Sequence record: ON287372.1 | Direction: 5' to 3' (one strand) | Length of the DNA stretch: 64,000 nucleotides | The notes under the pieces: model-generated | What the model was told of the DNA's origin: nothing | The model's database searches: none | The model's input: the letters and a program-made list of their open reading frames with translations, nothing else | Translations under genes and position numbers: made by a program | Shown here: piece by piece, positions 1,348 to 64,000 of the stretch | Layout: every line of letters begins with the position of its first letter | How positions within the stretch are numbered: position 1 is the first letter of the stretch

Positions 1348-1885
1348 TTAGGATAAAATCCTCTTGTTGAGGTTTCTTCTCGAATACCTTGCAACGGTTG
1401 TTACTCTCGTCATGATTAATGACGAACCCAGTAGACTCAAAGAACCCACATCCTTTTTTGTTTTGCGCTACACAGAACGCTTTTACTGATGCTGGCTCAG
1501 TTAACGACACCAATGCCTCATAGAGCGTTTTAGCCACATTACCTAGGCGATGACCCTCATCTACATAGAGACGTTCAATAAGGAGCTCCTGTCGCTCTAT
1601 AATCGCACTACTGAAACCGATTGGGTTGTTGTCGTAAAGAACAGCAGCCAACAAGTAAGATCCTGAGGTTAAACTCAGTTCTGACATGTGCTCGTAGAAC
1701 GTTTCAGTCTCAGAGACGATACCGGCTAACTTTTCGTGGTACTTGTTCAGGGTGTCAATCTTGCGATCTAAGGAACTCTTGTGCGTAGTCATGAATTCAA
1801 GCATTTCTGCTTCATTGACGGAACTATCGAAAAGACGGATTGTGTACATGTTGGTTAATTTATTCTTGCTAAAGTTAGTATTCAA
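1295..1885 (-). CDS. GNAT-family acetyltransferase
   Basis: IERLYVDEGHRLGNVAKTL (acetyl-CoA motif A-like) and GFFESTGF; true start may be MYTIRLF. Confidence 0.75.
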   Translation of the reverse strand: MNTNFSKNKLTNMYTIRLFDSSVNEAEMLEFMTTHKSSLDRKIDTLNKYHEKLAGIVSETETFYEHMSELSLTSGSYLLAAVLYDNNPIGFSSAIIERQELLIERLYVDEGHRLGNVAKTLYEALVSLTEPASVKAFCVAQNKKGCGFFESTGFVINHDESNNRCKVFEKKPQQEDFILNEIPREYSQHQEGYRSY

Positions 1886-1889
1886 AGGT

Positions 1890-1900
1890 GTGATATATAC
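1890..1900 (-). promoter_or_regulatory. Variant early (virion RNAP) promoter
   Basis: Minus strand GTATATATCAC, one mismatch from the GTATATATTAC motif seen at four other sites; upstream of the GNAT. Confidence 0.45.
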
Positions 1901-1901
1901 T

Positions 1902-3236
1902 TCAAACCTTCTCGAGATAAAGCATTAGGGCAGCCGCACTTTTCATCGTGTTAGACATTAGCCCAGGTTGCTCTCCAGTCCATTGTTCATTGGCCTGAAT
2001 TAAAACCCCTTCCATTAACGTAACGTTCCCGCCATTATCGTAGTAGACTCTGACAGGCATCCCTGGAGTAAGCAGTCTGATATCTGACCGTTGCCAGGTT
2101 GTTACCATAAGCATACCACGCTTACCTGAAAGATCAGACTGGACTTTAGCAAGGTTATCAGTAACCCCGCGAACTCCCGCCAATGCGCGCTTATCTGCAC
2201 GTGGCTCAGCACCAATGTCTGCACTGATATCCTGACGGTTATAGACAGATTGGTTATTGTCGTTAATCGCAGGCTTATCCAAGAACCCAGAGGCTCGGGT
2301 AAAGTGGATTGCAGTCTCACCGTTAATGCTGTTTGAGACGGAGAGGTCTTGCATCTTAACCGCACCTGCGCAAACTACCGTAATCTCCTCACCAACCTTC
2401 TTGAAAGAACGATCGGATGCAGGGATCATCAGAGATGAGCTCTGGATGATGGTCAATCTACGTGTTGTGGTCTTAAACCGGCGAGTATTGAACAATGGGT
2501 AAACGTACCAACGCTGGTTTTGAATGAACGACCCGATACCGTGATTATAAATCCCGTTTATCTCATCCTGAAGAAACGCAGCCAGACCAACCATCCGGAT
2601 GTTGTTCTCAATAACTAGATCCTGGATCACATCAGTAGGTTTATCGTTATCTGGATCGACAACATCTAACGAAACGAGCTTAGGTAATCCTTTAGCTGCA
2701 TCTTCATTGGTCTGAGTGATGATCATAGACTTCAGAACTTCAACCGGTTTAGCGTACCGGAATATGCCCTGGGCATACTTGGTATTCATTGAGACAGCGA
2801 TAGGATCAACCAACTGGATACGTAGCATTCTCAGCTCATCTTTACCATCCGTGTAAGGGGCATTAGTTACAGATGAGTCAGAGGTTAATTGGGCAGCGGA
2901 GTTATCTTTCAGGATAACGCGGAATGCGGTAGTGTACCGTAAACCAGAAGTCAACAGAGTACTGGAGACAGGGTCGACTTGTTCCTGAACCAGTGTAGCG
3001 TTCAAGTTGTCACGGTTAGCGTACAGCAAGTTATAGTCAGCTGTGATGACTGCGATATTCATTTCGGTGTCATGAGTAAAACTCGTGACGTAATCAGACT
3101 CTGTGTATTTCTCAATAACACGAGTCACTTCCAGCTTTCGATTTGGCAATGTGAAAATAAGACGGAACCGGAATCGGGGATAACTCCCCGACCCAGCTAT
3201 CTCCATTGCCTGTTTTCTCAACAGGGCAGCATTCAT
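1902..3236 (-). CDS. Virion structural protein, probable baseplate hub-like (phiKZ gp101-like position)
   Basis: 444 aa, last gene of the conserved structural operon; assignment by synteny and size. Confidence 0.5.
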   Translation of the reverse strand: MNAALLRKQAMEIAGSGSYPRFRFRLIFTLPNRKLEVTRVIEKYTESDYVTSFTHDTEMNIAVITADYNLLYANRDNLNATLVQEQVDPVSSTLLTSGLRYTTAFRVILKDNSAAQLTSDSSVTNAPYTDGKDELRMLRIQLVDPIAVSMNTKYAQGIFRYAKPVEVLKSMIITQTNEDAAKGLPKLVSLDVVDPDNDKPTDVIQDLVIENNIRMVGLAAFLQDEINGIYNHGIGSFIQNQRWYVYPLFNTRRFKTTTRRLTIIQSSSLMIPASDRSFKKVGEEITVVCAGAVKMQDLSVSNSINGETAIHFTRASGFLDKPAINDNNQSVYNRQDISADIGAEPRADKRALAGVRGVTDNLAKVQSDLSGKRGMLMVTTWQRSDIRLLTPGMPVRVYYDNGGNVTLMEGVLIQANEQWTGEQPGLMSNTMKSAAALMLYLEKV

Positions 3237-11701: not shown

Positions 11702-13156
11702 TTATTCGGCCATACCGGAAAGGTCGGTCGATTTCGCTTTAAGTGACTTCTCAGCGTACTCTAATGAGATACGCGCCATATTACCGAAGTAGGATGCAAG
11801 TTTCGTTGTAGGGCCGCTGAGGCGACTTGCTACGGTGCTGGTGATGGTACGAAGAGAGCTCATGGTGGATTCGAGATCTTTAGCATCCTCATCACCATTG
11901 GTGTTCTGAAGACGGGAACCTGCACGATTGATTTCATTCATTGCAGAGTTGCGATCAGAAACTAAACCGTCCAGTCCACGGAGGATTTCACCAATGTTCT
12001 TAACTGATTCGGCAATGGCACGGCAATCGGTAGCGGAAAGACGATTGAACTCATTTTCCTCTTCATCGCTAACCCCGGAGTTACCCATGTTCCATTTCTT
12101 AGATTCTTCAGAATCATCGAGGAACTCAATCCGTGAGTTACGTACTGCATTAGCTACGTTGCGAATGTACGCATCCGGGGTATCGGCTTCCTGAGCCTTA
12201 ACAACTACAGCGGCCAAAGTACAGTTACCCAAGAGCTTATCGGAGACGAGTGTCTCAGCAACGATACCGTTGTTGCCGCGCAGTAAGATTTCTGCCAAAG
12301 AAGGCTCTTCAGTTTTCTTCATGAAGGAAGTCAACGAGTTGGTTGGCTCCTCAATGATCTTACGGATTTTGTCCGCTGCATTACCGACTGAACCGGCATC
12401 GGTGGCATCAGTGGATGCTACTACAGAAGCAATACCTTTTGCATGGTCAATCGCTTGCTGTTGGAGATCCATAAATGATGCGCGGCAGATATTAGCCAGG
12501 TCACGCAGGTGACGAGGAACATCATTGACTTGACCGTCGATAGCCAACTTACCGATACGGCTGGACTTAATACGATCGTCACCAGGTATGCGGTCTTCCG
12601 CATTGTCCAGAATAATCTGGGCACGGCTAACCAAACGATCGGCACCAGTGAGTACACGCTGAGCCCATTGCTCCATGTGTTGACCCATGGCCTTCAGCCA
12701 TTCACGGAAACGAGTCCACCACTCACGGATGACTTCTTTGAAGCCTTCCAACGCAACAGCGGTTTGGCTCTGGCCAAGTACCGAGTAGGATTCGTTGGAT
12801 ACGTACATGGAGATCGGCAACCCTTCCTTCTCTGCGAACAGATTAAGGAAAGTGGCAGCTTCCATGGAGATACCCGACTCTTTGTTTTTCTCAATGACAT
12901 CTACCACACCTTCGTAGGTTTTGATAGTGTCAGTGAAATCTTTTTCTTCTACTACCGAAGCAAAGTCTTCATCTTCTGGGATGTCAATATTGGCGATAGT
13001 TGGGTTAGTTTCAACTGGATCTGGGATCTCTGCCGGAGGAGCTTCGTTAGGTACGATCTCGTCTTTGTGATCCACTACTACAGTATCACCGGCAAACTCT
13101 TCTACTGCAACTTTTGGTTTAGCGGCGAGAATGCGTTGATAGTAATTTGGTTTCAT
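11702..13156 (-). CDS. phiKZ-like internal head protein paralog
   Basis: ISMEAA...VSNES...VALEGFKEVIREWW; TATG at 13185-13188 upstream. Confidence 0.8.
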   Translation of the reverse strand: MKPNYYQRILAAKPKVAVEEFAGDTVVVDHKDEIVPNEAPPAEIPDPVETNPTIANIDIPEDEDFASVVEEKDFTDTIKTYEGVVDVIEKNKESGISMEAATFLNLFAEKEGLPISMYVSNESYSVLGQSQTAVALEGFKEVIREWWTRFREWLKAMGQHMEQWAQRVLTGADRLVSRAQIILDNAEDRIPGDDRIKSSRIGKLAIDGQVNDVPRHLRDLANICRASFMDLQQQAIDHAKGIASVVASTDATDAGSVGNAADKIRKIIEEPTNSLTSFMKKTEEPSLAEILLRGNNGIVAETLVSDKLLGNCTLAAVVVKAQEADTPDAYIRNVANAVRNSRIEFLDDSEESKKWNMGNSGVSDEEENEFNRLSATDCRAIAESVKNIGEILRGLDGLVSDRNSAMNEINRAGSRLQNTNGDEDAKDLESTMSSLRTITSTVASRLSGPTTKLASYFGNMARISLEYAEKSLKAKSTDLSGMAE

Positions 13157-13243
13157 GTTTTTGCTACCTTGGGAGGAGGATGAACATAGAAAACCAGGGA
13201 GAGAGGTTTCCCTCCCTCCCTGATCCTTTTACATCAATACCGA

Positions 13244-15565
13244 TTAAGCTTCTGCTTTATCAGCTGCAGGTGCAGCGGTAGGTAGAGATTTACCAGCAAC
13301 TGCCAGGGCAGCGCGAGCAACAGCAGAGAAGTACTTGATGGATTTAGAGAACGGAGCAACCGTTTCTTTTTCCAGAGCCAGTACAACCTGACGCAGGCCG
13401 GTTTGCAGTTCGTTTGCAACTTCGTCGCCTTCACCCATTTTAGCCAGGTGTTCACCTGCAGCATCGATCTTACCAGATGCAGCTTTGCATGGGCCGTCCA
13501 ATTTCTTAGTTTCTTCGATTGCATCCAGCAGACCGATTACTGCACGAGCAACGTCCATGATGTCAGTGCGGCTCAGCGCCTTGACTTCTTTAACGTCAAC
13601 TTCTTCGGTTACCTTGGTGAATACCAGGCAATCGCCTTTGCTCATGTCAGACAGGCTAGGTTCTTTGCTGTTATCGCCAACTTGTCCGCGCAGGACGTAA
13701 CCGCCCAGTTGAACGCGAGATTGACGGAAACCATCTTCTGAACCAGGTTCGGTCAGTTTAGAACGTACTGCGGAATCGGATTGTTCGAATGAACGTGCCA
13801 GTTCCAGAGCAACCGTTTCAACGGACTCATCGCCTTTCAGCTGAGCAATCACGTCGCCAGCTTTACCGCAAGCGGCCATATCCAGAGTTGCCAGCGGCAG
13901 GTAGGTACGGTTGATCAGATCGGTCAGTTCACGTACGTCTGCAGGCAGGTCTTTGGAGAACGCATTGTCTTTGGTCAGCCAAACGGCGCCATTAACATCG
14001 ATCGTTGCGTCGGAATCGGTTTCGATCGCTTCAGCTTTCTGCAGGATAGATTCAGCAGATTTGCGCAGCGCGGTGGTGGTGTCGAACAGGGATTTCAGCC
14101 ATGCAGCGAAACGTTCACGTTGTTCTTTCATCCACGCACGCAGATCATTCCACCATTGACGCAGAGAGTCTTTGATGCTTTCGATTGCAATGCGAGTTTG
14201 AGAACGTGCGTAACCGCCGTAAGACTCAGTCGCTACGTTCATGTCCGCAGGGATACCATCACGTTGAGTGAAGATATTCAGCAGCGCAGCGGCTTCAACG
14301 GAAACACCGCCGTTTTCCAGCGCGTTGTCCAGAACAGCAACTACTTCCGGGTAAGTCTGAACTGCATCAGACAGAACTTCGTAAGTAGGCTCTTCAGTTT
14401 CCAGTTCAGTTTCTACTGCATCAGCAGCGGTGAACGCTTCGTCGACTTCGGTAACAGCAGGAACAACACCATCGGTGGATTCTGCAACAGCTACGAAATC
14501 AGGAGCAGCTTCGGCTGGTTCGGTTACTGCGGCAGGAACTTCAACCGGAGCAGTTACAACTGCAGCTTCTTCAGTCTGTTGAACGCCGTCTACTGCGTCG
14601 CCAGTAGCAACTACGATTTCAGTTTCGCCAACAGGCTCTTCTGAAGGTTGCTCAACGATAACTGCAGCTGGTTCTTCCAGTGGTTGTTCGGTAACTTCGC
14701 CAGCTGGCGCGGCTACTTCATCAGCACCGGTAGTTTCGCCTTCAGCACCTGGTTCAACTTCAACAGCAGGTGGCTCTACTGGTTCAGCAGCAACATCGGA
14801 TGCAGCGTCAGCAGCAGCCTGGTCGGCAGCGGCATCGATCTCAGCTTCCTGAGCAGCAGCTTCATCAGTTGCAGCAGCATCTGCGTCTACATCGGCAGCG
14901 ACTGCATCATCAGCGGAAGCATCAGCTTCGGCTTCTGCAGCGGCAGGTTCACCAGCGGCTTCATCTTCAGCTGCCGCGGCAGCTTCTTCTTCAGCGTTCT
15001 GCTCTTCTTCAGTAGAAGCTTCTTCCTCTGCATTTGCAGCTTCTTCTTCCTGCTCAGCAGTTTCTTCCTCTTCTTTAGAATCGGGTTCGGCGTTCAGTTC
15101 TGCTGCTACGGCCGCCGCGGCATCTTCGTTAGATGCGGCAGTTTCTTCGCCAGTTGCGACAGCTTCGTTTTCTTCGGCTTCCGGATCAGGTTTGCCTTCG
15201 GTAGGAGCAGTACCGGATTCGTCTTTCGATTCGGTATTCTCTACTTCAGACACGCCTTTTTCATCAGCAACTTCATCAGAAGTGCCGTTACCGGTGTCTT
15301 TGTTTGCGCCGTCGTCTTTGATCGGGTTAGTTTCACCAGCGATAACTTCATCCACTTCCGCCATAGTGACGTCTTTGGTAGTATCTGGCTGTTGTTCAGC
15401 AGACTGGATACCTTCGCCGCCGGTGGCGACTTCGTCTTTGTCTGCGTTCTGAGCGGCCAGTTGATCGATCTTCGCTTGATCGATTACTTCAGACTCCACT
15501 GCTGGAGCAGGGCGCTTAGAAAGAATGCTTTTTGTAAACTTCATCGATAAACTCCTCAGGAACAA
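13244..15565 (-). CDS. phiKZ-like internal head protein paralog with long acidic propeptide
   Basis: 773 aa (start may be MKFTKS at 15544); ~400 aa Ala/Glu-rich N-terminus, then VSVEAA...VATES...IAIESIKDSLRQWW aligning with the 484-aa paralog. Confidence 0.8.
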   Translation of the reverse strand: MFLRSLSMKFTKSILSKRPAPAVESEVIDQAKIDQLAAQNADKDEVATGGEGIQSAEQQPDTTKDVTMAEVDEVIAGETNPIKDDGANKDTGNGTSDEVADEKGVSEVENTESKDESGTAPTEGKPDPEAEENEAVATGEETAASNEDAAAAVAAELNAEPDSKEEEETAEQEEEAANAEEEASTEEEQNAEEEAAAAAEDEAAGEPAAAEAEADASADDAVAADVDADAAATDEAAAQEAEIDAAADQAAADAASDVAAEPVEPPAVEVEPGAEGETTGADEVAAPAGEVTEQPLEEPAAVIVEQPSEEPVGETEIVVATGDAVDGVQQTEEAAVVTAPVEVPAAVTEPAEAAPDFVAVAESTDGVVPAVTEVDEAFTAADAVETELETEEPTYEVLSDAVQTYPEVVAVLDNALENGGVSVEAAALLNIFTQRDGIPADMNVATESYGGYARSQTRIAIESIKDSLRQWWNDLRAWMKEQRERFAAWLKSLFDTTTALRKSAESILQKAEAIETDSDATIDVNGAVWLTKDNAFSKDLPADVRELTDLINRTYLPLATLDMAACGKAGDVIAQLKGDESVETVALELARSFEQSDSAVRSKLTEPGSEDGFRQSRVQLGGYVLRGQVGDNSKEPSLSDMSKGDCLVFTKVTEEVDVKEVKALSRTDIMDVARAVIGLLDAIEETKKLDGPCKAASGKIDAAGEHLAKMGEGDEVANELQTGLRQVVLALEKETVAPFSKSIKYFSAVARAALAVAGKSLPTAAPAADKAEA

Positions 15566-51150: not shown

Positions 51151-52236
51151 TTAAAGTACAGCTTCGATACGGACTTCAAGTCCAGGGACTAATTCGACCC
51201 AGCGCCCCAGGTTGGTGATATGGAACGCATGGTAGAGGATAGGCGGAGAAATGTCTTCGCCCAAGTTACGTTTAATCTGGCGGGCTACGCGGTTGATGAC
51301 CCAGCTAAACCCCTCTTGTTTACCGTAGACCATATCGTAGGTCAAAACGAAGTTGGTCTTCTTACCATTGGCAGTAGCAGCCCCGCGATAGACGATGACC
51401 TTACTCATATCGTCACCGCGTTTACATGCGCATTGCAGCTTTTCCAACCGTGCAGTCAGTCTTTTGAAAAGTCCGTTTGCTGTCGTTTTTCCTAGCCCCC
51501 GTGGAATTGAGAAATATTGCATCGTATCATTGACCCAGGCGATTATTGGGGTTACGGCTTTTTCAGGGGGCGTAATACCCTTTAATTTAATCGCTGCTTC
51601 AATTAGCTCAGGAGAAAGGGAGATCGTTTCTTTCTTAATTTCCTGCGGACTGTCACTGACCGCACTGACTTCCACCGGCGTGAAGATCTGAGTGATTTTA
51701 TCAGAAGGTTGTCCGATCGGGGTAACTACTAGAGTGTAATCGCCTCCCATGAGCGCCAGCTCATTATCACCTGAACGGAGCTTGGTCCATTCTTCGCAAT
51801 TAAGTGAGCTCAAATGAGCTCTGGCCGTCAAAGACAAGCTACGAAGAGAGTTAACTTTAAACAGTGAGAACATGTCGTAGATCTCACCACGGTAGCAAAT
51901 TGCACGGATCAATCGAGTTGAGAAACTCCAACGCGGACGCAGAGAAACACTAACGCGTTCCAGTTCGATATCAGTAGGTTTCGTTATGCAAATGTAGAGA
52001 TTAAGTGCGGTACTTAGTCCAACGACTCCCGTATAGCCATCACGAATACGGAGCGCAATGCTTTCAACATACGGGTCAGACAAGGTCATGAACTCTTCTT
52101 TAGAGAAGACCTCTCGGTTACTCGTTATGGCATCCATCAACGACCTAAGTGCTTCGACATCAAAAATAGAAGTCAAACGATGCTGACCGTTAGCGGTGAT
52201 TTCTACCTTAACCATTTTTTCTTTTTTCACTTTCAA
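51151..52236 (-). CDS. Hypothetical protein (tandem-module family)
   Basis: 361-aa ORF. Confidence 0.75.
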   Translation of the reverse strand: MKVKKEKMVKVEITANGQHRLTSIFDVEALRSLMDAITSNREVFSKEEFMTLSDPYVESIALRIRDGYTGVVGLSTALNLYICITKPTDIELERVSVSLRPRWSFSTRLIRAICYRGEIYDMFSLFKVNSLRSLSLTARAHLSSLNCEEWTKLRSGDNELALMGGDYTLVVTPIGQPSDKITQIFTPVEVSAVSDSPQEIKKETISLSPELIEAAIKLKGITPPEKAVTPIIAWVNDTMQYFSIPRGLGKTTANGLFKRLTARLEKLQCACKRGDDMSKVIVYRGAATANGKKTNFVLTYDMVYGKQEGFSWVINRVARQIKRNLGEDISPPILYHAFHITNLGRWVELVPGLEVRIEAVL

Positions 52237-58892: not shown

Positions 58893-60410
58893 TCAAATGA
58901 CGCCAGGTAAATGCTCTGTCCTAACCTTCGTTACACGATTGCTGAACAGCCTTTCCTTACTTTTGGCATAGTCGATGTGCTTCTGAATATCCAAGCAGAC
59001 GAAGTAGTGGAAGACTTGCGCGAACTTCTTATCTCCCTTAAGTTCACGTAAACGACCCAGCGCCTGAACGTTAGCGTTCGGAGAATCAATTGCCACAGTC
59101 ATAATCGCCTGAGTCAAGTCAGGGATGTCAACCGCAGTACCCGATTTACCGATCGTAGAGACAATAACATCAGAGTCGATAAGAATCTGATAATCGTCCC
59201 CAGCCGTATAACTGTTGATGATCAAGTCAGGCATCCTCGCCTGGAACAGATCTCGTACCTTCTGACACAACTCAATCGTGGCAGCAAATACCAACAGCTT
59301 ATGCCCTTCCTCTCTCGTAAGTACCCATTGATTCAAGGTGTACTTATAGATTGCTTCGATGTAATTCTTTTCTCGTTCCTGGTCTTTCATGATCCACGCT
59401 TCATAAGCCGTGTGGGAATAACTCCCCTGACCACCATTAAACCTGACCTTAGACGGATCCTTAAGTCTGTACAGAACACGCACTGACTCAACATATACGT
59501 TTAGCTTACCGCCCTCTTTACGGAACTTACGAGGCAGCAACATCTCGTACATTCTCTGCATGAAGTCCTGGTTAGAGAACAGCGTAGCAGAGAGATACAT
59601 GGTCTTTGGAACGTGAGAGAACAAATCGATGATGAAGTTAGCATGGAAGTCCTTGTGAACCTCATCGGTGATGCGCAACCCAACACCCAGTACTTCCCAG
59701 ATGTCTTTAGGATCGATATCCTCGCAACCGCTACCAACTACCTTACCGTTTTTGTAATTCTTAAAGAAATCACGCAACGTGGCAGTGGATAGGAAAATGG
59801 CTTTAACATTAGGGATCCCAGTTTCTTTTACTTCCCGTAAAAGTTTGTACAGTTTAGTACACCCGCAGCAGGATCGAACTTCCTCGGGCTGAAGTCCTAA
59901 CAACCGATAGAACTCAGGAACCCAACGATCCTCGTAGCCGCCTAATGTAACAACTGCAAAGCGCATTCCGAGTTTAGCTGTAACGTAAAGAGAACAAAGT
60001 GTCTTACCGAAACCAGCTTGAGCGGTGATAACTTTCTGCTTACCCTCACTCATGCCAAATTCGATAATAGGGACTTGCTCTTCCCACGGTGTTGCATCGA
60101 TCTCGAAATCAAACCTAACTGGTTCGTACATGGGAACAACTTCGATTTCAAAGGAGTCTTCCGTGAACCCCTCGTACATCGCCTTTTGATAGAAATCTTC
60201 CCAGAAGTTATCATGGAAACAGATCTCTTCCCTCTCCAAGTCACGACGAGCATAAATCCTTTTCTGCTCCTGGACGAAACGTCCTCGCTTCTTAGTGAGG
60301 TTACTCTCGATAAGCGTTTCGGCCATAGACCTACGATATCCGCGGGCCTTAGCTGTAATCGCAGTCACCGCAAAGTAATGACTGTATCGAGTGATTCTAA
60401 ACTCTACCAT
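58893..60410 (-). CDS. SF2 DExH helicase (phiKZ gp75/UvsW-like)
   Basis: AQAGFGKT, ITDEVH, LSAT, QALGRLR. Confidence 0.88.
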   Translation of the reverse strand: MVEFRITRYSHYFAVTAITAKARGYRRSMAETLIESNLTKKRGRFVQEQKRIYARRDLEREEICFHDNFWEDFYQKAMYEGFTEDSFEIEVVPMYEPVRFDFEIDATPWEEQVPIIEFGMSEGKQKVITAQAGFGKTLCSLYVTAKLGMRFAVVTLGGYEDRWVPEFYRLLGLQPEEVRSCCGCTKLYKLLREVKETGIPNVKAIFLSTATLRDFFKNYKNGKVVGSGCEDIDPKDIWEVLGVGLRITDEVHKDFHANFIIDLFSHVPKTMYLSATLFSNQDFMQRMYEMLLPRKFRKEGGKLNVYVESVRVLYRLKDPSKVRFNGGQGSYSHTAYEAWIMKDQEREKNYIEAIYKYTLNQWVLTREEGHKLLVFAATIELCQKVRDLFQARMPDLIINSYTAGDDYQILIDSDVIVSTIGKSGTAVDIPDLTQAIMTVAIDSPNANVQALGRLRELKGDKKFAQVFHYFVCLDIQKHIDYAKSKERLFSNRVTKVRTEHLPGVI

Positions 60411-60506
60411 AACAGTCCTCGTAGATTATATCGCTCCATAACTAGAGGTGGATACGTGCTTTCTTAAATACGTCTCCTTTAATTAATCAAACAAAAAATA
60501 AAGAAA

Positions 60507-60525
60507 GGAGGGGACGAACCCCTCC
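60507..60525 (-). terminator. Intrinsic terminator
   Basis: GGAGGGG/CCCCTCC stem then TTTCTTTATTTTTT. Confidence 0.7.
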
Positions 60526-60537
60526 GATCTATTTTAC

Positions 60538-60600
60538 TTAAGCCTTGATCGCAGTACCTTCACGCTGGTGCTTCCTGCGCCAGAATTCCACATCCACTAA
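60538..60600 (-). pseudogene. Orphaned duplicate of the last 20 codons of the RNAP beta' gene
   Basis: Translates LVDVEFWRRKHQREGTAIKA*, versus LVDVEYWRKKHKREGTEIKA* at 61397-61459. Confidence 0.85.
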
Positions 60601-61394
60601 CTAGCAGAATAGGAATCATAACTGTCGGAATTTTTAATCGCCCATACCTCAGCAATTTCAATCCCATGCCAGTCGGCGATATCTCCAATATCCATGAACC
60701 AAAGGTCGTCTTTCACAGCGTTATAAATGGCAGCACTCACGCCACCAATTTTAACTTTGCTATCGACATAACCCTTCTCAATCGATTCAGAAACACCCAT
60801 GTTTCGTTTACGGGTACGCATGTAGAAAGAATGCGTGTGGACCCTGTACCTTTCAGATACCTCCACATTGCTCAATTTCTCTCCGGTATGCGGATCCTCA
60901 GTAATGACGTTTCGTCCCATGTTACGCATCTGATTACGATGAGTTATCCAACGCAGATTTCCAGGCTCGTAATTACCGTCGTTATCTATTCGATCAAGTT
61001 CCATTTTATCACTATAGCCTTCAGGTATCCCAGCAAGGAAACCTTCAAAGGTGGAGAAAGAAGGATGATAACCTACCCCTCTTCCGCCATAACGATGATA
61101 CTTTTTGTTCTTAGGAGAATCGCAACGGTTACGCATGTTCCAGTAAATGCTGTAAAGTCGCGACCCCTCCATTCCATGGGTTATGTTCGCTTCTCTCGCC
61201 CGGTCTTTTGCATAACAGCCGCAGGATTGAGTTTTTCCTGTACCGAGTCTCCTTTGAACTACGATTGTCATTTTACCGCAATCGCACCGACAGTTCCATT
61301 TAGCGTTACAACCGGCATCCCTGCCCCAAAATGAAACTACAGTAAGGCGACCGATATGGTCGCCTGGTTTAATGAAATACTTCTGTACTCCCAT
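60597..61394 (-). mobile_element. Free-standing HNH homing endonuclease
   Basis: ELDRIDNDGNYEPGNLRWITHRNQMRN; N-terminal WNCRCDCG...QSCGC module. Confidence 0.9.
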
Positions 61395-61396
61395 AG

Positions 61397-63388
61397 TTAG
61401 GCCTTAATTTCGGTACCCTCACGTTTATGCTTTTTACGCCAATATTCAACGTCTACAAGCAAGAAATCAAATGGATGCGATGGCCTGCATGGGTTGGTGT
61501 AACTGCTAGCCGACTGCAACATCTCGTACTGTTGTTCGTACGAAGACTTAACAGACAGACTACGACCATTCATGATCGAGGCTTTAGAGTCGAACCAACG
61601 ACCCGTTCCTTTCTTAGGCAGGCGATAGTCGCCATTCGCCGGATCACGCGACATCATCGCGTACAGAACCATTTCAACGATCGCCAAGTTAACCGAGAAC
61701 TTACGGTTAGTCATTTCACAAATGTCCTTCATGGCCATGGACAGAATATCCGGGTCAGTCAGGTCATAACGAAGCTTGGCTTTAGACTCTTTGGTGGACA
61801 TGAACAGAGTAGACTTCAGTTCAGCCATCAGTTCCAGAGTAGATTGGTGACGTTCCGGGAACCGAAGCAGAGATTCGGTGTTATCCCAGTTAGTCATGTC
61901 AATCTTGATCTTCTTACCCAGAGTATCGTAACCATAATCCAGCATGTGCTTCACTACCGCTTCCGTTAAGAACGGACGATACGAGCCATGAGATGTAGGA
62001 ACGATTACCGTGGTGATAGAACGATCTTCATCGTCGTTATGGATCAACAACGTCAAACTACGAATAACCGAGAAGCGAGCCAGTTCAGCATTGCTCAGGT
62101 TTTTCATTACGGTGATGTCAGACAGACGCGGGATATCAGCCAAGTCGATTTCGATCTCGACCTTCTTCTCCCACACCCCAGTCGAGAACATGATCTCGGA
62201 GATGTCACCGGCGTTAACCAGATACTCCGAATAGAACGGATCAACTTCAAAGCCTTCACTGGTCGCGGAGATCAGCAAGTGCTTCGTTGAGATTACGTCC
62301 TGAGATACACGTTCGTTCTGCGTTACAGTACACGCATGACCGAGGTTAGTCCCACGCTGAATAGACTCACCGATATCACCCATGCAGGTGCTACAGATGA
62401 CACCGTCATCAGGATGCCAACAGCTGGCTACGTTACGGAGCTGGATGATCTTACCGCGCAAATGACGATCGCTTGGTTTAATCATCTTCAGCGTACCATC
62501 TTCCGCCAAATACCGCTTCCCTGGCAGAATGGTATCGAGTTCATCAGCTTCTACAAGCCAAGGAACCGTTTCCGTAGAACCACAATCACCAACCCAGATG
62601 CTTTTCACCACGAACGTAAAGAGCTGCAGCTCGCGGTTATAGTACTCGGTTTGTTTAACCGGGTCATCGGTCGCTTGCATCGCTTTGGATGCATCACGAC
62701 TACACATCAGATAGTGAGAGAGCTGGTGTAACCCACGAGAGAACCCTGAGCTGACCATTGTTGGGAAGATTGTCTGATCGATCTCAGAACAGAATCCTCG
62801 GGCTCCAACAACCTGGTCAAACTGAGCGATCTTAATCTGCTTGTTTCGGTTTGCAGCCACCATCGGGTTGAAGCGGAGTTCAGCTTTCTCCATCAGTACC
62901 TTATTGATACGTGAATAGAGTTCGTTGATCCCCGCCTTGGTGTGCCGCATATCGCTAAGCGCCTTTGCAATATCCGGATCCCTGTGGATTTGCAAAAGCG
63001 ACAAAGCATCAGCAGAGTTTTGATAACGCTCACCTTGGGAAGAAAAGGCATTGTGCAACATATTCGATAAACGATATGCTGTTGCCTGCAGCTCCTCCCG
63101 ATCGGTTTCCGGATGAACCTGAAGAACCGAATTCATCCCGCGATTTCGCAGTTTGTCTTCGATCCCTGGCTCCAAACGTTCATCCCAAAGGAAGTGTTTC
63201 AGTTCCAATGGGACATCGTTATATTCCCGATGATACTGCCAGAAATACCAGGATACGAGAACCTGTTCCCAAAACGTCGGGATTTCACCATCGTCAAAGA
63301 CAATGATGAACTGCTCCATGTCATCTGCGCGTGCCCAGATTTCACGTTCGCTCCAGTTTACTAATTCGCGTGCGTAACGAGTTCTCAC
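61397..63388 (-). CDS. Non-virion RNA polymerase beta'-like subunit, C-terminal part (phiKZ gp74-like)
   Basis: QVVGARGF, DCGS, LRNVASC...ICSTCMG Zn site, SQDVISTKH. Confidence 0.85.
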   Translation of the reverse strand: MRTRYARELVNWSEREIWARADDMEQFIIVFDDGEIPTFWEQVLVSWYFWQYHREYNDVPLELKHFLWDERLEPGIEDKLRNRGMNSVLQVHPETDREELQATAYRLSNMLHNAFSSQGERYQNSADALSLLQIHRDPDIAKALSDMRHTKAGINELYSRINKVLMEKAELRFNPMVAANRNKQIKIAQFDQVVGARGFCSEIDQTIFPTMVSSGFSRGLHQLSHYLMCSRDASKAMQATDDPVKQTEYYNRELQLFTFVVKSIWVGDCGSTETVPWLVEADELDTILPGKRYLAEDGTLKMIKPSDRHLRGKIIQLRNVASCWHPDDGVICSTCMGDIGESIQRGTNLGHACTVTQNERVSQDVISTKHLLISATSEGFEVDPFYSEYLVNAGDISEIMFSTGVWEKKVEIEIDLADIPRLSDITVMKNLSNAELARFSVIRSLTLLIHNDDEDRSITTVIVPTSHGSYRPFLTEAVVKHMLDYGYDTLGKKIKIDMTNWDNTESLLRFPERHQSTLELMAELKSTLFMSTKESKAKLRYDLTDPDILSMAMKDICEMTNRKFSVNLAIVEMVLYAMMSRDPANGDYRLPKKGTGRWFDSKASIMNGRSLSVKSSYEQQYEMLQSASSYTNPCRPSHPFDFLLVDVEYWRKKHKREGTEIKA

Positions 63389-64000
63389 TCTTCTTCACCT
63401 TCATCGTCGTAGTCAGCTTCAGGTTCCATGTATTCTTCTTCATCGTCTTCTTCATCCGTAGAGACGTCTTCTAACATCCGAGCCAGAGAACTGACTTTAG
63501 GACGGTTGATTGGATCAGGATACTTACGAAGCATCTCGATTTCCAGATCCGATGCAGTATCGACTTCAGCATATGCGAACTGCGCGCCGTTACAATACAT
63601 CGCATTGTTCAGATAACTCAGAGACAACGAGTTACCGACTGGAATCTTCTGACGATTGATAGTGAAGGTCAAGTTAGTTGGCGTTTCACTTTCAATGACC
63701 TGTTTCCAGATTGCTTCCTGCGCTTTCGGGTTGTTAGCGCGATCCAACATATCAGCAGCCCAGTCACCACCCAGGATACCTGAGTAGTTACGGATCTCTG
63801 CTTCACCGAAGAATCGGAGCGGAGACTGACGATATGGCAAGTTGTGTTTATCACGAGCACTCACCTTAGTTGGAACACCATGCACCTGACGTTTAGGTAC
63901 ATCCACCGCAGACCAGTCGTGGCCAGTTTTCTCGAGCACCATCATGTAGACGTCACCGATCATTACCGGATCCATACTGACTTCTTCACGACCCAGATCA
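63385..64000 (-). CDS. Non-virion RNA polymerase beta-like subunit, C-terminal part (partial)
   Basis: IGDVYMMVLEK and PLRFFGEAE match beta C-terminal motifs; frame stays open to 64000. Confidence 0.85.
   Translation of the reverse strand, partial: DLGREEVSMDPVMIGDVYMMVLEKTGHDWSAVDVPKRQVHGVPTKVSARDKHNLPYRQSPLRFFGEAEIRNYSGILGGDWAADMLDRANNPKAQEAIWKQVIESETPTNLTFTINRQKIPVGNSLSLSYLNNAMYCNGAQFAYAEVDTASDLEIEMLRKYPDPINRPKVSSLARMLEDVSTDEEDDEEEYMEPEADYDDEGEEE

Follow-up and report, generated by a model that had tools for sequence, protein, structure and literature searches.

The free-standing homing endonucleases of T-even phages (Seg, Mob) are known for homing without introns, for marker exclusion, for co-conversion that starts from a cut some way off, and for one-sided homing with illegitimate repair (PMC2988022; mobE, PMC2790892). 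In T4, one-sided homing with illegitimate microhomology joints, distant cleavage sites and co-conversion have been established experimentally (PMC2988022). PhiPA3 gp210 is an intron-encoded HNH nickase that has the virion RNA polymerase (RNAP) beta gene of PhiKZ as its target and affects competition between phages (PMC11620839). Fungal mitochondria contain gene hybrids created by mobile open reading frames (ORFs), as in atp6 of Allomyces macrogynus and in atp6, atp9, cox2 and nad3 of Glomus (PMC3630166). At the locus described here, in Serratia phage vB_SmaS-Totoro, a free-standing HNH-like gene lies between two copies of the end of beta'C, an RNAP subunit gene. The feature is real and does not arise from chance, and the best account of its duplicate is that imprecise homing left it behind as a scar; the mechanism requires nothing outside established homing biology.

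The stretch of DNA analysed (the window) is the last 64 kb of the Totoro record ON287372.1 (278,767 bp; genus Moabitevirus), and by megablast its positions 59800-63400 are 100% identical to the end of that record. Totoro is a jumbo phage of S. marcescens LVF3 whose source was sewage in Germany. All genes discussed lie on the minus strand, and negative positions (e.g. -63, -94) are counted from the end of the beta'C stop codon. Seven phages without the HNH gene served for comparison: Moabite, Yaphecito, ParM-25, Kodama, Haymo, BUCT660 and 2050HW. Kodama has the same host strain as Totoro and the same type of source (sewage, Germany). To these were added the Logan contigs L011, L012 and L031, and L023 and L025 from more distant IMG/VR genomes.

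Like the Seg and Mob genes, the Totoro element is a separate intergenic ORF beside an essential gene, sporadic among close relatives and associated with co-conversion of its flank. Its predicted cut falls tens of bases inside the neighbouring gene, and imprecise one-sided repair would explain the duplicate. The Totoro element differs from them in its protein family, which joins a CapR-like zinc ribbon to an HNH-like module that is atypical in having Arg where His is expected, and in its host, a nucleus-forming jumbo phage. A retained orphan gene end is, to our knowledge, not a described feature of T4 elements. With PhiPA3 gp210 the element has in common that it is of HNH type, that it sits at a multisubunit RNAP gene of a chimallivirus and that it could act on co-infecting relatives; gp210, however, is carried by a group I intron that interrupts the virion RNAP beta gene at a codon of the catalytic site, while the Totoro gene is free-standing, follows the stop codon of the non-virion beta'C gene and has no ribozyme. 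The fungal hybrids provide the same order of parts (native core, foreign in-frame C-terminus, endonuclease ORF, displaced native C-terminus, with the two C-termini diverged), and Totoro shows this order too, the foreignness of its upstream copy being drawn from context. Unlike Totoro, the hybrids belong to organelle genomes, involve LAGLIDADG or GIY-YIG enzymes and sometimes have the ORF fused in frame. The fungal native remnant is also almost identical to close relatives; for Totoro no close element-free relative was found in the collections searched, and the orphan is closest to Kodama, at 49 of 63 bases.

Two copies of the beta'C gene end

The beta'C gene (61397..63388, minus) is intact and encodes 663 residues, ending in ...FDFLLVDVEYWRKKHKREGTEIKA and a stop codon. 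Its product is the subunit of the multisubunit non-virion RNAP that corresponds to the C-terminal half of beta', and is homologous to phiKZ gp74: it matches chain D of the phiKZ non-virion RNAP (PHIKZ074, 7ogp_D; E=2.6e-64, residues 5-644) and phrog_3015 (E=4e-206), and more weakly residues 664-821 of E. coli beta' (E=7e-4) and the NCBIfam rpoC models. A Pfam search gave no match, and GenBank labels the gene 'beta subunit'. An earlier reading made from the letters of the window (the sequence-only reading) had taken the host gene to be RNAP beta', which is right as to family and too broad as to extent, only the C-terminal half being encoded. The length of 663 residues is the same in six full-length HNH-less relatives, from which 2050HW and ParM-25 differ in annotation. 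In 2050HW the orthologue (L008 1225-3217) is annotated as two overlapping coding sequences, 1225-1785 and 1778-3217, under the name 'ATP-dependent DNA helicase', probably reflecting a frameshift or sequencing error together with a wrong name. Alignment of beta'C with gp74 ends at ...HP(F/Y)D.LL(V), and HPFD..L..DV is the last motif conserved across the wider beta'C family. The 20-residue tail is a genus-specific extension, highly variable in more distant relatives, and in the wider family no part of the protein is less conserved.

The upstream, expressed copy of the last 20 codons and stop (61397..61459, minus) is in frame with the body of beta'C and reads LVDVEYWRKKHKREGTEIKA. The orphan copy (60538..60600, minus) reads LVDVEFWRRKHQREGTAIKA, is contiguous with the terminator and lies within no ORF that bears a start codon; a TAG stands directly upstream of it in frame, and it has neither a start codon nor a ribosome-binding site. 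Both copies point the same way, with 859 bases between them, and 798 of those bases are taken up by the ORF of a free-standing HNH-like putative homing endonuclease (60597..61394, minus; 265 residues; phrog_374, E=9e-53), which starts 2 bases past the beta'C stop codon. The stop codon of this ORF overlaps the first codons of the orphan (TTAGTG), so that the junction TTAG (60597..60600, minus) is shared, its four bases belonging both to the end of the HNH ORF (TAG, 60597-60599) and to the start of the orphan (TTA GTG). Homology of the orphan to beta'C upstream of -63 was not found: the sequence there is the conserved HNH C-terminus, and its in-frame similarity to beta'C is at chance level. In a predicted RNA fold the stop/orphan junction lies within a small hairpin (60584-60617, minus), with an outer stem GAUUCC/GGAAUU and an inner stem CUGCUA/UAGUGG that includes G-U pairs; the 151-base stretch as a whole folds with z=-2.2, mostly from the terminator, and the junction hairpin may be a product of chance. 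The orphan should carry annotation as a gene remnant.

The two copies, their positions and their 16 shared residues out of 20 are as the sequence-only reading had them (44 of 63 bases are identical), as is the largely synonymous character of their differences, with different codons used at 10 of the 16 shared residues. Across all six frames of the whole window the next-best match to the 20-residue peptide is 8/20, so the similarity of the copies is not due to chance. A hand count of base changes gives 15 synonymous and 4 non-synonymous, and the Nei-Gojobori method gives 14 and 5, with a non-synonymous proportion (pN) of 0.105 and saturated synonymous sites. To call one copy "recoded" overstates this, however: tail alleles share 37-52 of 63 bases pairwise across lineages, and 44/63 lies within that ordinary divergence. 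The copies differ at 14 third positions in 20 codons, a count within the top ~2% of 20-codon windows when Totoro is compared with Kodama or Moabite; between Totoro and L012 this same window gives an equal count. That their divergence is strongly synonymous and the frame intact shows the copies to have diverged in separate genomes, each as a functioning gene end; they are alleles of diverged lineages, each under purifying selection while in use, with no sign of deliberate recoding. The longest exact run common to both is only ~5-6 bases, and homologous deletion of the HNH gene between them is therefore unlikely.

The surroundings of the locus in relatives indicate which copy is the resident one. 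In all seven HNH-less Moabitevirus phages the tail occurs once, with the conserved terminator directly after it and the helicase gene beyond; contigs L011 and L031 have the same arrangement, and L023 and L025 also lack the HNH gene, with a helicase ORF directly after beta'C. HNH-less relatives with both copies would have refuted the sequence-only reading; the seven phages and three HNH-less contigs, ten relatives in all, have just one. In Totoro the intrinsic terminator, a hairpin with a T-run (60504..60525, minus; annotated at the equivalent position in Moabite and aligned in relatives), ends the beta'C-HNH transcription unit, and no terminator was found between beta'C and the HNH gene. The orphan, not the upstream copy, abuts this terminator, as the single copy does in relatives, and so holds the ancestral position. 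In the comparison of each copy with HNH-less relatives that the sequence-only reading had proposed, base identity thus left the matter undecided, while position and context placed the orphan. It would appear from this context, rather than from identity, that the upstream copy is the foreign one and arrived with the HNH gene.

A clean insertion and two mosaic tracts

The closest homologue of the HNH-like protein, P0016 (65% identical, 265 residues), is encoded on the metagenomic Logan contig L012 at the same site as in Totoro. There the HNH gene lies between the beta'C stop codon and the terminator without an orphan: its start overlaps the beta'C stop (TAATG), repeating the order of tail, stop and HNH gene seen at the Totoro upstream copy, and the terminator begins within ~4 bases of its own stop. 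The HNH C-termini are full length in both (...NSDSYDSYSAS in Totoro, ...NSDSYEEYSKS in L012), in lineages whose beta'C genes are 77% identical. Presence of the element is sporadic at this one locus, found in Totoro and L012 and absent from the seven phages and from L011, L023, L025 and L031; in Totoro it has its own ORF, with no intron or intein, beside an intact neighbour. The upstream tail in Totoro ends AAG GCC TAA (61397-61410, minus), in which AAGG resembles a Shine-Dalgarno sequence ~9 bases before the HNH start. Because of this and of the stop/start overlap in L012, translation of the HNH gene seems coupled to that of beta'C, a functional link between gene end and element.

L012 can be compared with an HNH-less sibling, L011, to which it is 97.5% identical over 8 kb. 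Of the 63 differences between their beta'C genes, 27 fall in the last 110 bases (-94 to -4; 24.5% versus 1.9%, Fisher p=4e-19), and the heterology runs from -94 right up to the HNH gene, a pattern such as co-conversion during homing would be expected to leave. Kodama and Moabite, whose beta'C genes are ~99% identical, show a second tract: 31 of 48 differences lie in the last 210 bases (-193 to -28; 14.8% versus 0.95%, p=5.5e-20), with zero non-synonymous changes in the first ~580 codons. The two tracts overlap at -94..-28, and the Totoro junction at -63 is inside both, in the middle of the overlap. The homologous stretch of Totoro (61424..61490, minus) encodes ...RPxHPFDxLLVDVExWRRKH and is the predicted target region of the endonuclease; Totoro's own version of it is presumably resistant. 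These two independent recombination tracts across the junction lend support to the homing interpretation put forward in the sequence-only reading.

Kodama and Moabite have only one other mosaic block in the region, around the Walker A codons of the helicase (window-equivalent 60150-59520), where they show 14-23 differences per 60 bases and almost none in the compared flanks. In Haymo, BUCT660 and 2050HW this is the site of an intein-like insert in the helicase, which Kodama and Moabite do not have. Because the second block surrounds the site of such an insert, mosaic patches in Moabitevirus appear to mark homing sites. The helicase gene itself, in Totoro a UvsW-like gene (58893..60410, minus; phrog_16, E=4.5e-30; Moabite annotation), is the downstream flank and lies outside the element. 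Its orthologue in the Haymo group (L006 1-1108) is ~1 kb longer and interrupted right after Walker A GFGK; the insert begins in a Hint-like way, contains a LAGLIDADG-like motif (LAGLIDADG_3, E=0.0012, from a truncated piece) and is probably an intein.

We consider it likely that the duplicate is the scar of imprecise homing by the free-standing HNH-like endonuclease gene. The element's normal home would be the interval between the beta'C stop codon and the terminator, where it would be co-transcribed with beta'C, as is indicated in Totoro by the fact that the only terminator follows the orphan. In alleles without the HNH gene, the HNH product would introduce a nick or cut somewhere in the final ~100 bases of beta'C, and repair from an HNH-carrying genome would bring in the donor's gene end along with the HNH gene (co-conversion). 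In the Totoro lineage, repair would have been homology-based on the left side only; on the right, the end of the HNH ORF would have been joined illegitimately to the broken recipient end at -63, possibly via the TTAG microhomology, leaving the recipient's last 20 codons as a silent orphan before the terminator. The recipient's -63..0 segment ended up downstream of the HNH gene, so the break would lie at -63 or further upstream, probably in the interval -94..-28.

The sequence-only reading, in which an endonuclease inserted into an essential gene, supplied a replacement C-terminus and thereby pinpointed its target site, is in this light partly supported. The HNH gene did insert at the gene's end, where it interrupts nothing, beta'C being full length. 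A replacement end arriving with the HNH gene agrees with the L012-like layout; the duplicate would be a by-product of one imprecise event rather than something the element regularly supplies. The junction furnishes a boundary for the cut, not the site itself.

A regular mobile cassette of replacement tail plus endonuclease gene, inserting in the coding region at about -63, would make Totoro the primary state and L012 a later one from which the orphan was lost. Such a cassette has a precedent in the three-part layout of the fungal hybrids (PMC3630166), and would suit both a junction that falls exactly at the HNH stop codon and an HNH start that overlaps or abuts the tail in both carriers, the tail end being functionally tied to the HNH gene. 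We nevertheless regard it as rather unlikely, given that only one of the two carriers has an orphan, that the HNH-linked tails are dissimilar, and that the clean layout of L012, with L011 heterology extending from -94 up to the HNH gene, fits ordinary homologous co-conversion.

The HNH-like protein

Whether imprecise homing can explain the locus depends in part on the HNH-like protein, which matches several PHROG families named HNH endonuclease, phrog_374 among them. It combines an N-terminal CxC...CGC zinc ribbon, a predicted central beta-beta-alpha module (131-157) and C-terminal helices that resemble a helix-turn-helix. An AlphaFold2 model (mean predicted local distance difference test score, pLDDT, 84; predicted template modelling score, pTM, 0.51) places strands at 131-135 and 147-151 and a helix at 152-157, with a pLDDT of about 90 over the module. 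Foldseek against BFVD returned many phage proteins that bear the name 'HNH / HTH homing endonuclease' (E as low as 4e-21), the matches being other uncharacterised phage proteins only, named HNH, HTH or AP2. Some family members have duplicated N-terminal modules and match the Pfam CapR homology domain, and others match helix-turn-helix models at the C-terminus. The CapR homology domain, a zinc-finger module that binds DNA, occurs in phage homing endonucleases (PMC10448857).

The sole solved structure with detectable sequence similarity is I-HmuI (PDB 1u3e), an HNH nicking homing endonuclease of Bacillus phage SPO1, and the match is marginal (E=0.039), covering residues 80-163 over the beta-beta-alpha motif and including ...NLRW(I/V)T. 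A 26-member family alignment has as invariants the CxC...CGC zinc ribbon, H73, YGGRG, D134-R135, N146 and W149, with Q155 nearly so. The intron-encoded I-HmuI has Asp-His where this family has an invariant Asp-Arg. The His of the I-HmuI motif is the catalytic base. Since R135 aligns with it, the family is by its sequence an atypical HNH family, in which the catalytic His of the superfamily is absent from the Totoro protein.

The family is very large, with 5,521 database relatives of the protein at E<=1e-15. Between Totoro and L012 the HNH genes have a pN of 0.24 and a synonymous proportion (pS) of 0.79, which is saturated, for a pN/pS of about 0.3; from the low pN relative to pS, the protein is evidently kept under purifying selection. 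No paralogue occurs within the window, and distant ones (28-32% identity) are found elsewhere in ON287372.1, at 51339-51884 and 166983-167501. The 265-residue 'hypothetical protein' of GenBank UQT03204.1 should carry annotation as a putative homing endonuclease.

Several observations weigh against imprecise homing as the origin of the duplicate. Asp-Arg at D134-R135 in 26 of 26 family members places nuclease activity in doubt, and the nuclease role of the family is a predicted one. Searches with the protein matched no Pfam or NCBIfam model even at E<=10, the Pfam HNH models included, and Foldseek of the whole model against the PDB gave no significant match, probably because the model is multi-domain and its pTM only 0.51. 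Base identity is not decisive as to which copy is resident, both being 44-45/63 against most relatives; against Kodama, the closest to the orphan, the orphan scores 49/63 and the upstream copy 45/63. The HNH-linked tails (Totoro upstream copy and L012) are not especially alike, at 38/63. Sliding identity and synonymous-difference profiles against relatives did not delimit Totoro's own co-conversion tract, no unique signal standing out because Totoro beta'C is ~17% diverged from relatives and mosaic over the entire gene. Finally, an HNH-less sibling of Totoro with the orphan allele as its normal gene end was not found among phage records, IMG/VR, JGI metagenomes, GTDB genomes and the protein collection. 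Scans of IMG/VR for such a sibling or for further carriers, with the HNH protein and with a beta'C tail alignment, returned nothing but beta'C loci without an HNH gene and distant relatives of the HNH protein in different surroundings; degenerate back-translated patterns of the two tail peptides and of the genus-level HPFD..LLVDVE.W..KH found nothing in JGI metagenomes, IMG/VR or GTDB genomes; and members of the beta'C protein cluster added only Moabite-type HNH-less contigs.

Some of these points would be accommodated if the HNH-like protein were not, or were no longer, a site-specific nuclease, its gene having arrived illegitimately and without relation to cleavage at a beta'C 3' end that is a fast-evolving recombination hotspot. 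The family-wide Arg, the absent Pfam and PDB matches and a tail that is the least conserved part of the protein all suit this account, which we judge quite improbable all the same. It does not readily explain why the same gene occupies the same site in two lineages only 77% identical in beta'C, nor why sharply bounded tracts occur in genomes otherwise about 98-99% identical over that gene, nor why the region's other mosaic block also coincides with a homing-type element. Purifying selection on the protein, and an architecture of DNA-binding and nuclease-like modules typical of homing endonuclease genes, likewise argue for homing.

Other homing elements in Totoro

Elsewhere in the Totoro genome, HNH genes interrupt two RNAP subunit genes, at ON287372.1 12059-14691 (L026 4059-6691) and 149263-155457 (L028 41263-47457). 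Rfam finds group I introns (RF00028) beside both, at record positions 13129-13423 (61.5 bits, E=1e-14) and 150461-150833 (49 bits, E=7e-11). In one of the split genes exon 1 ends inside an active-site-like ...NCDFDG motif, and in the other it ends ...YDD, the same kind of site as that of the PhiPA3 gp211/gp210/gp209 intron.

With such neighbours, and with a G as the base preceding the orphan, the HNH gene at beta'C might be supposed to lie in a self-splicing intron, the gene body being spliced to the downstream copy. This is very improbable, and we reject it: an Rfam search of 60300-61800 at E<=1 gave no group I signal, while the same search found both control introns in Totoro. Neither a ribozyme core nor a split host gene is present at the beta'C locus. 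The ORF leaves little of the 859 bases between the copies for anything else, the upstream copy completes a 663-residue protein with its own stop, and L012 has the HNH gene with no downstream copy to serve as splice partner. Local tandem duplication in Totoro, followed by drift of the unused copy, has next to nothing in its favour beyond the direct orientation of the copies and their 859-base spacing, for drift would give mostly non-synonymous changes and frame damage where a ratio of ~15:4 synonymous and an intact frame are seen, the synonymous sites are saturated with hardly any exact sequence shared, and both the HNH gene between the copies and the clean L012 counterpart would be left unexplained.

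With imprecise homing as the preferred explanation, homing elements are found at three Totoro RNAP genes, that of beta'C included. Since three RNAP genes carry elements and the adjacent helicase of relatives has an intein-like insert, the genes for RNAP and replication look like contested ground for homing elements in these nucleus-forming phages, a view relevant to the influence of such elements on competition and gene flow among jumbo phages. At the beta'C locus one-sided homing would have left a clean natural footprint; the process is known and, in a phage, seldom caught so clearly. For an uncharacterised phage protein family that is very widespread, the locus narrows the predicted target to about 70 bases in an essential gene, and Totoro (a carrier) and Kodama (a non-carrier with a mosaic patch) are a ready test pair for what is a well-defined, testable system.

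A more speculative and rather unlikely idea is that the HNH gene and a diverged gene end travel together as a module of endonuclease plus immune target allele, which nucleus-forming Serratia jumbo phages would direct against co-infecting relatives, as Totoro might against Kodama on S. marcescens LVF3. If so, the mosaic patch of Kodama would be an escape allele acquired under that pressure, and the idea of interference competition developed for PhiPA3 gp210 would come to cover free-standing elements besides intron-borne ones, and the non-virion RNAP besides that of the virion.

One further RNAP gene appears divided in the database for a different reason. The RNAP beta-like gene upstream of beta'C (63385-64000, minus) spans the origin of the circular record into ON287372.1 1-~1770, and read across the origin it forms a 785-codon ORF. 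GenBank has only its last 196 codons (TOTORO_03440) and leaves record positions 1-1760 without a gene; this is an annotation artefact and not a split gene.

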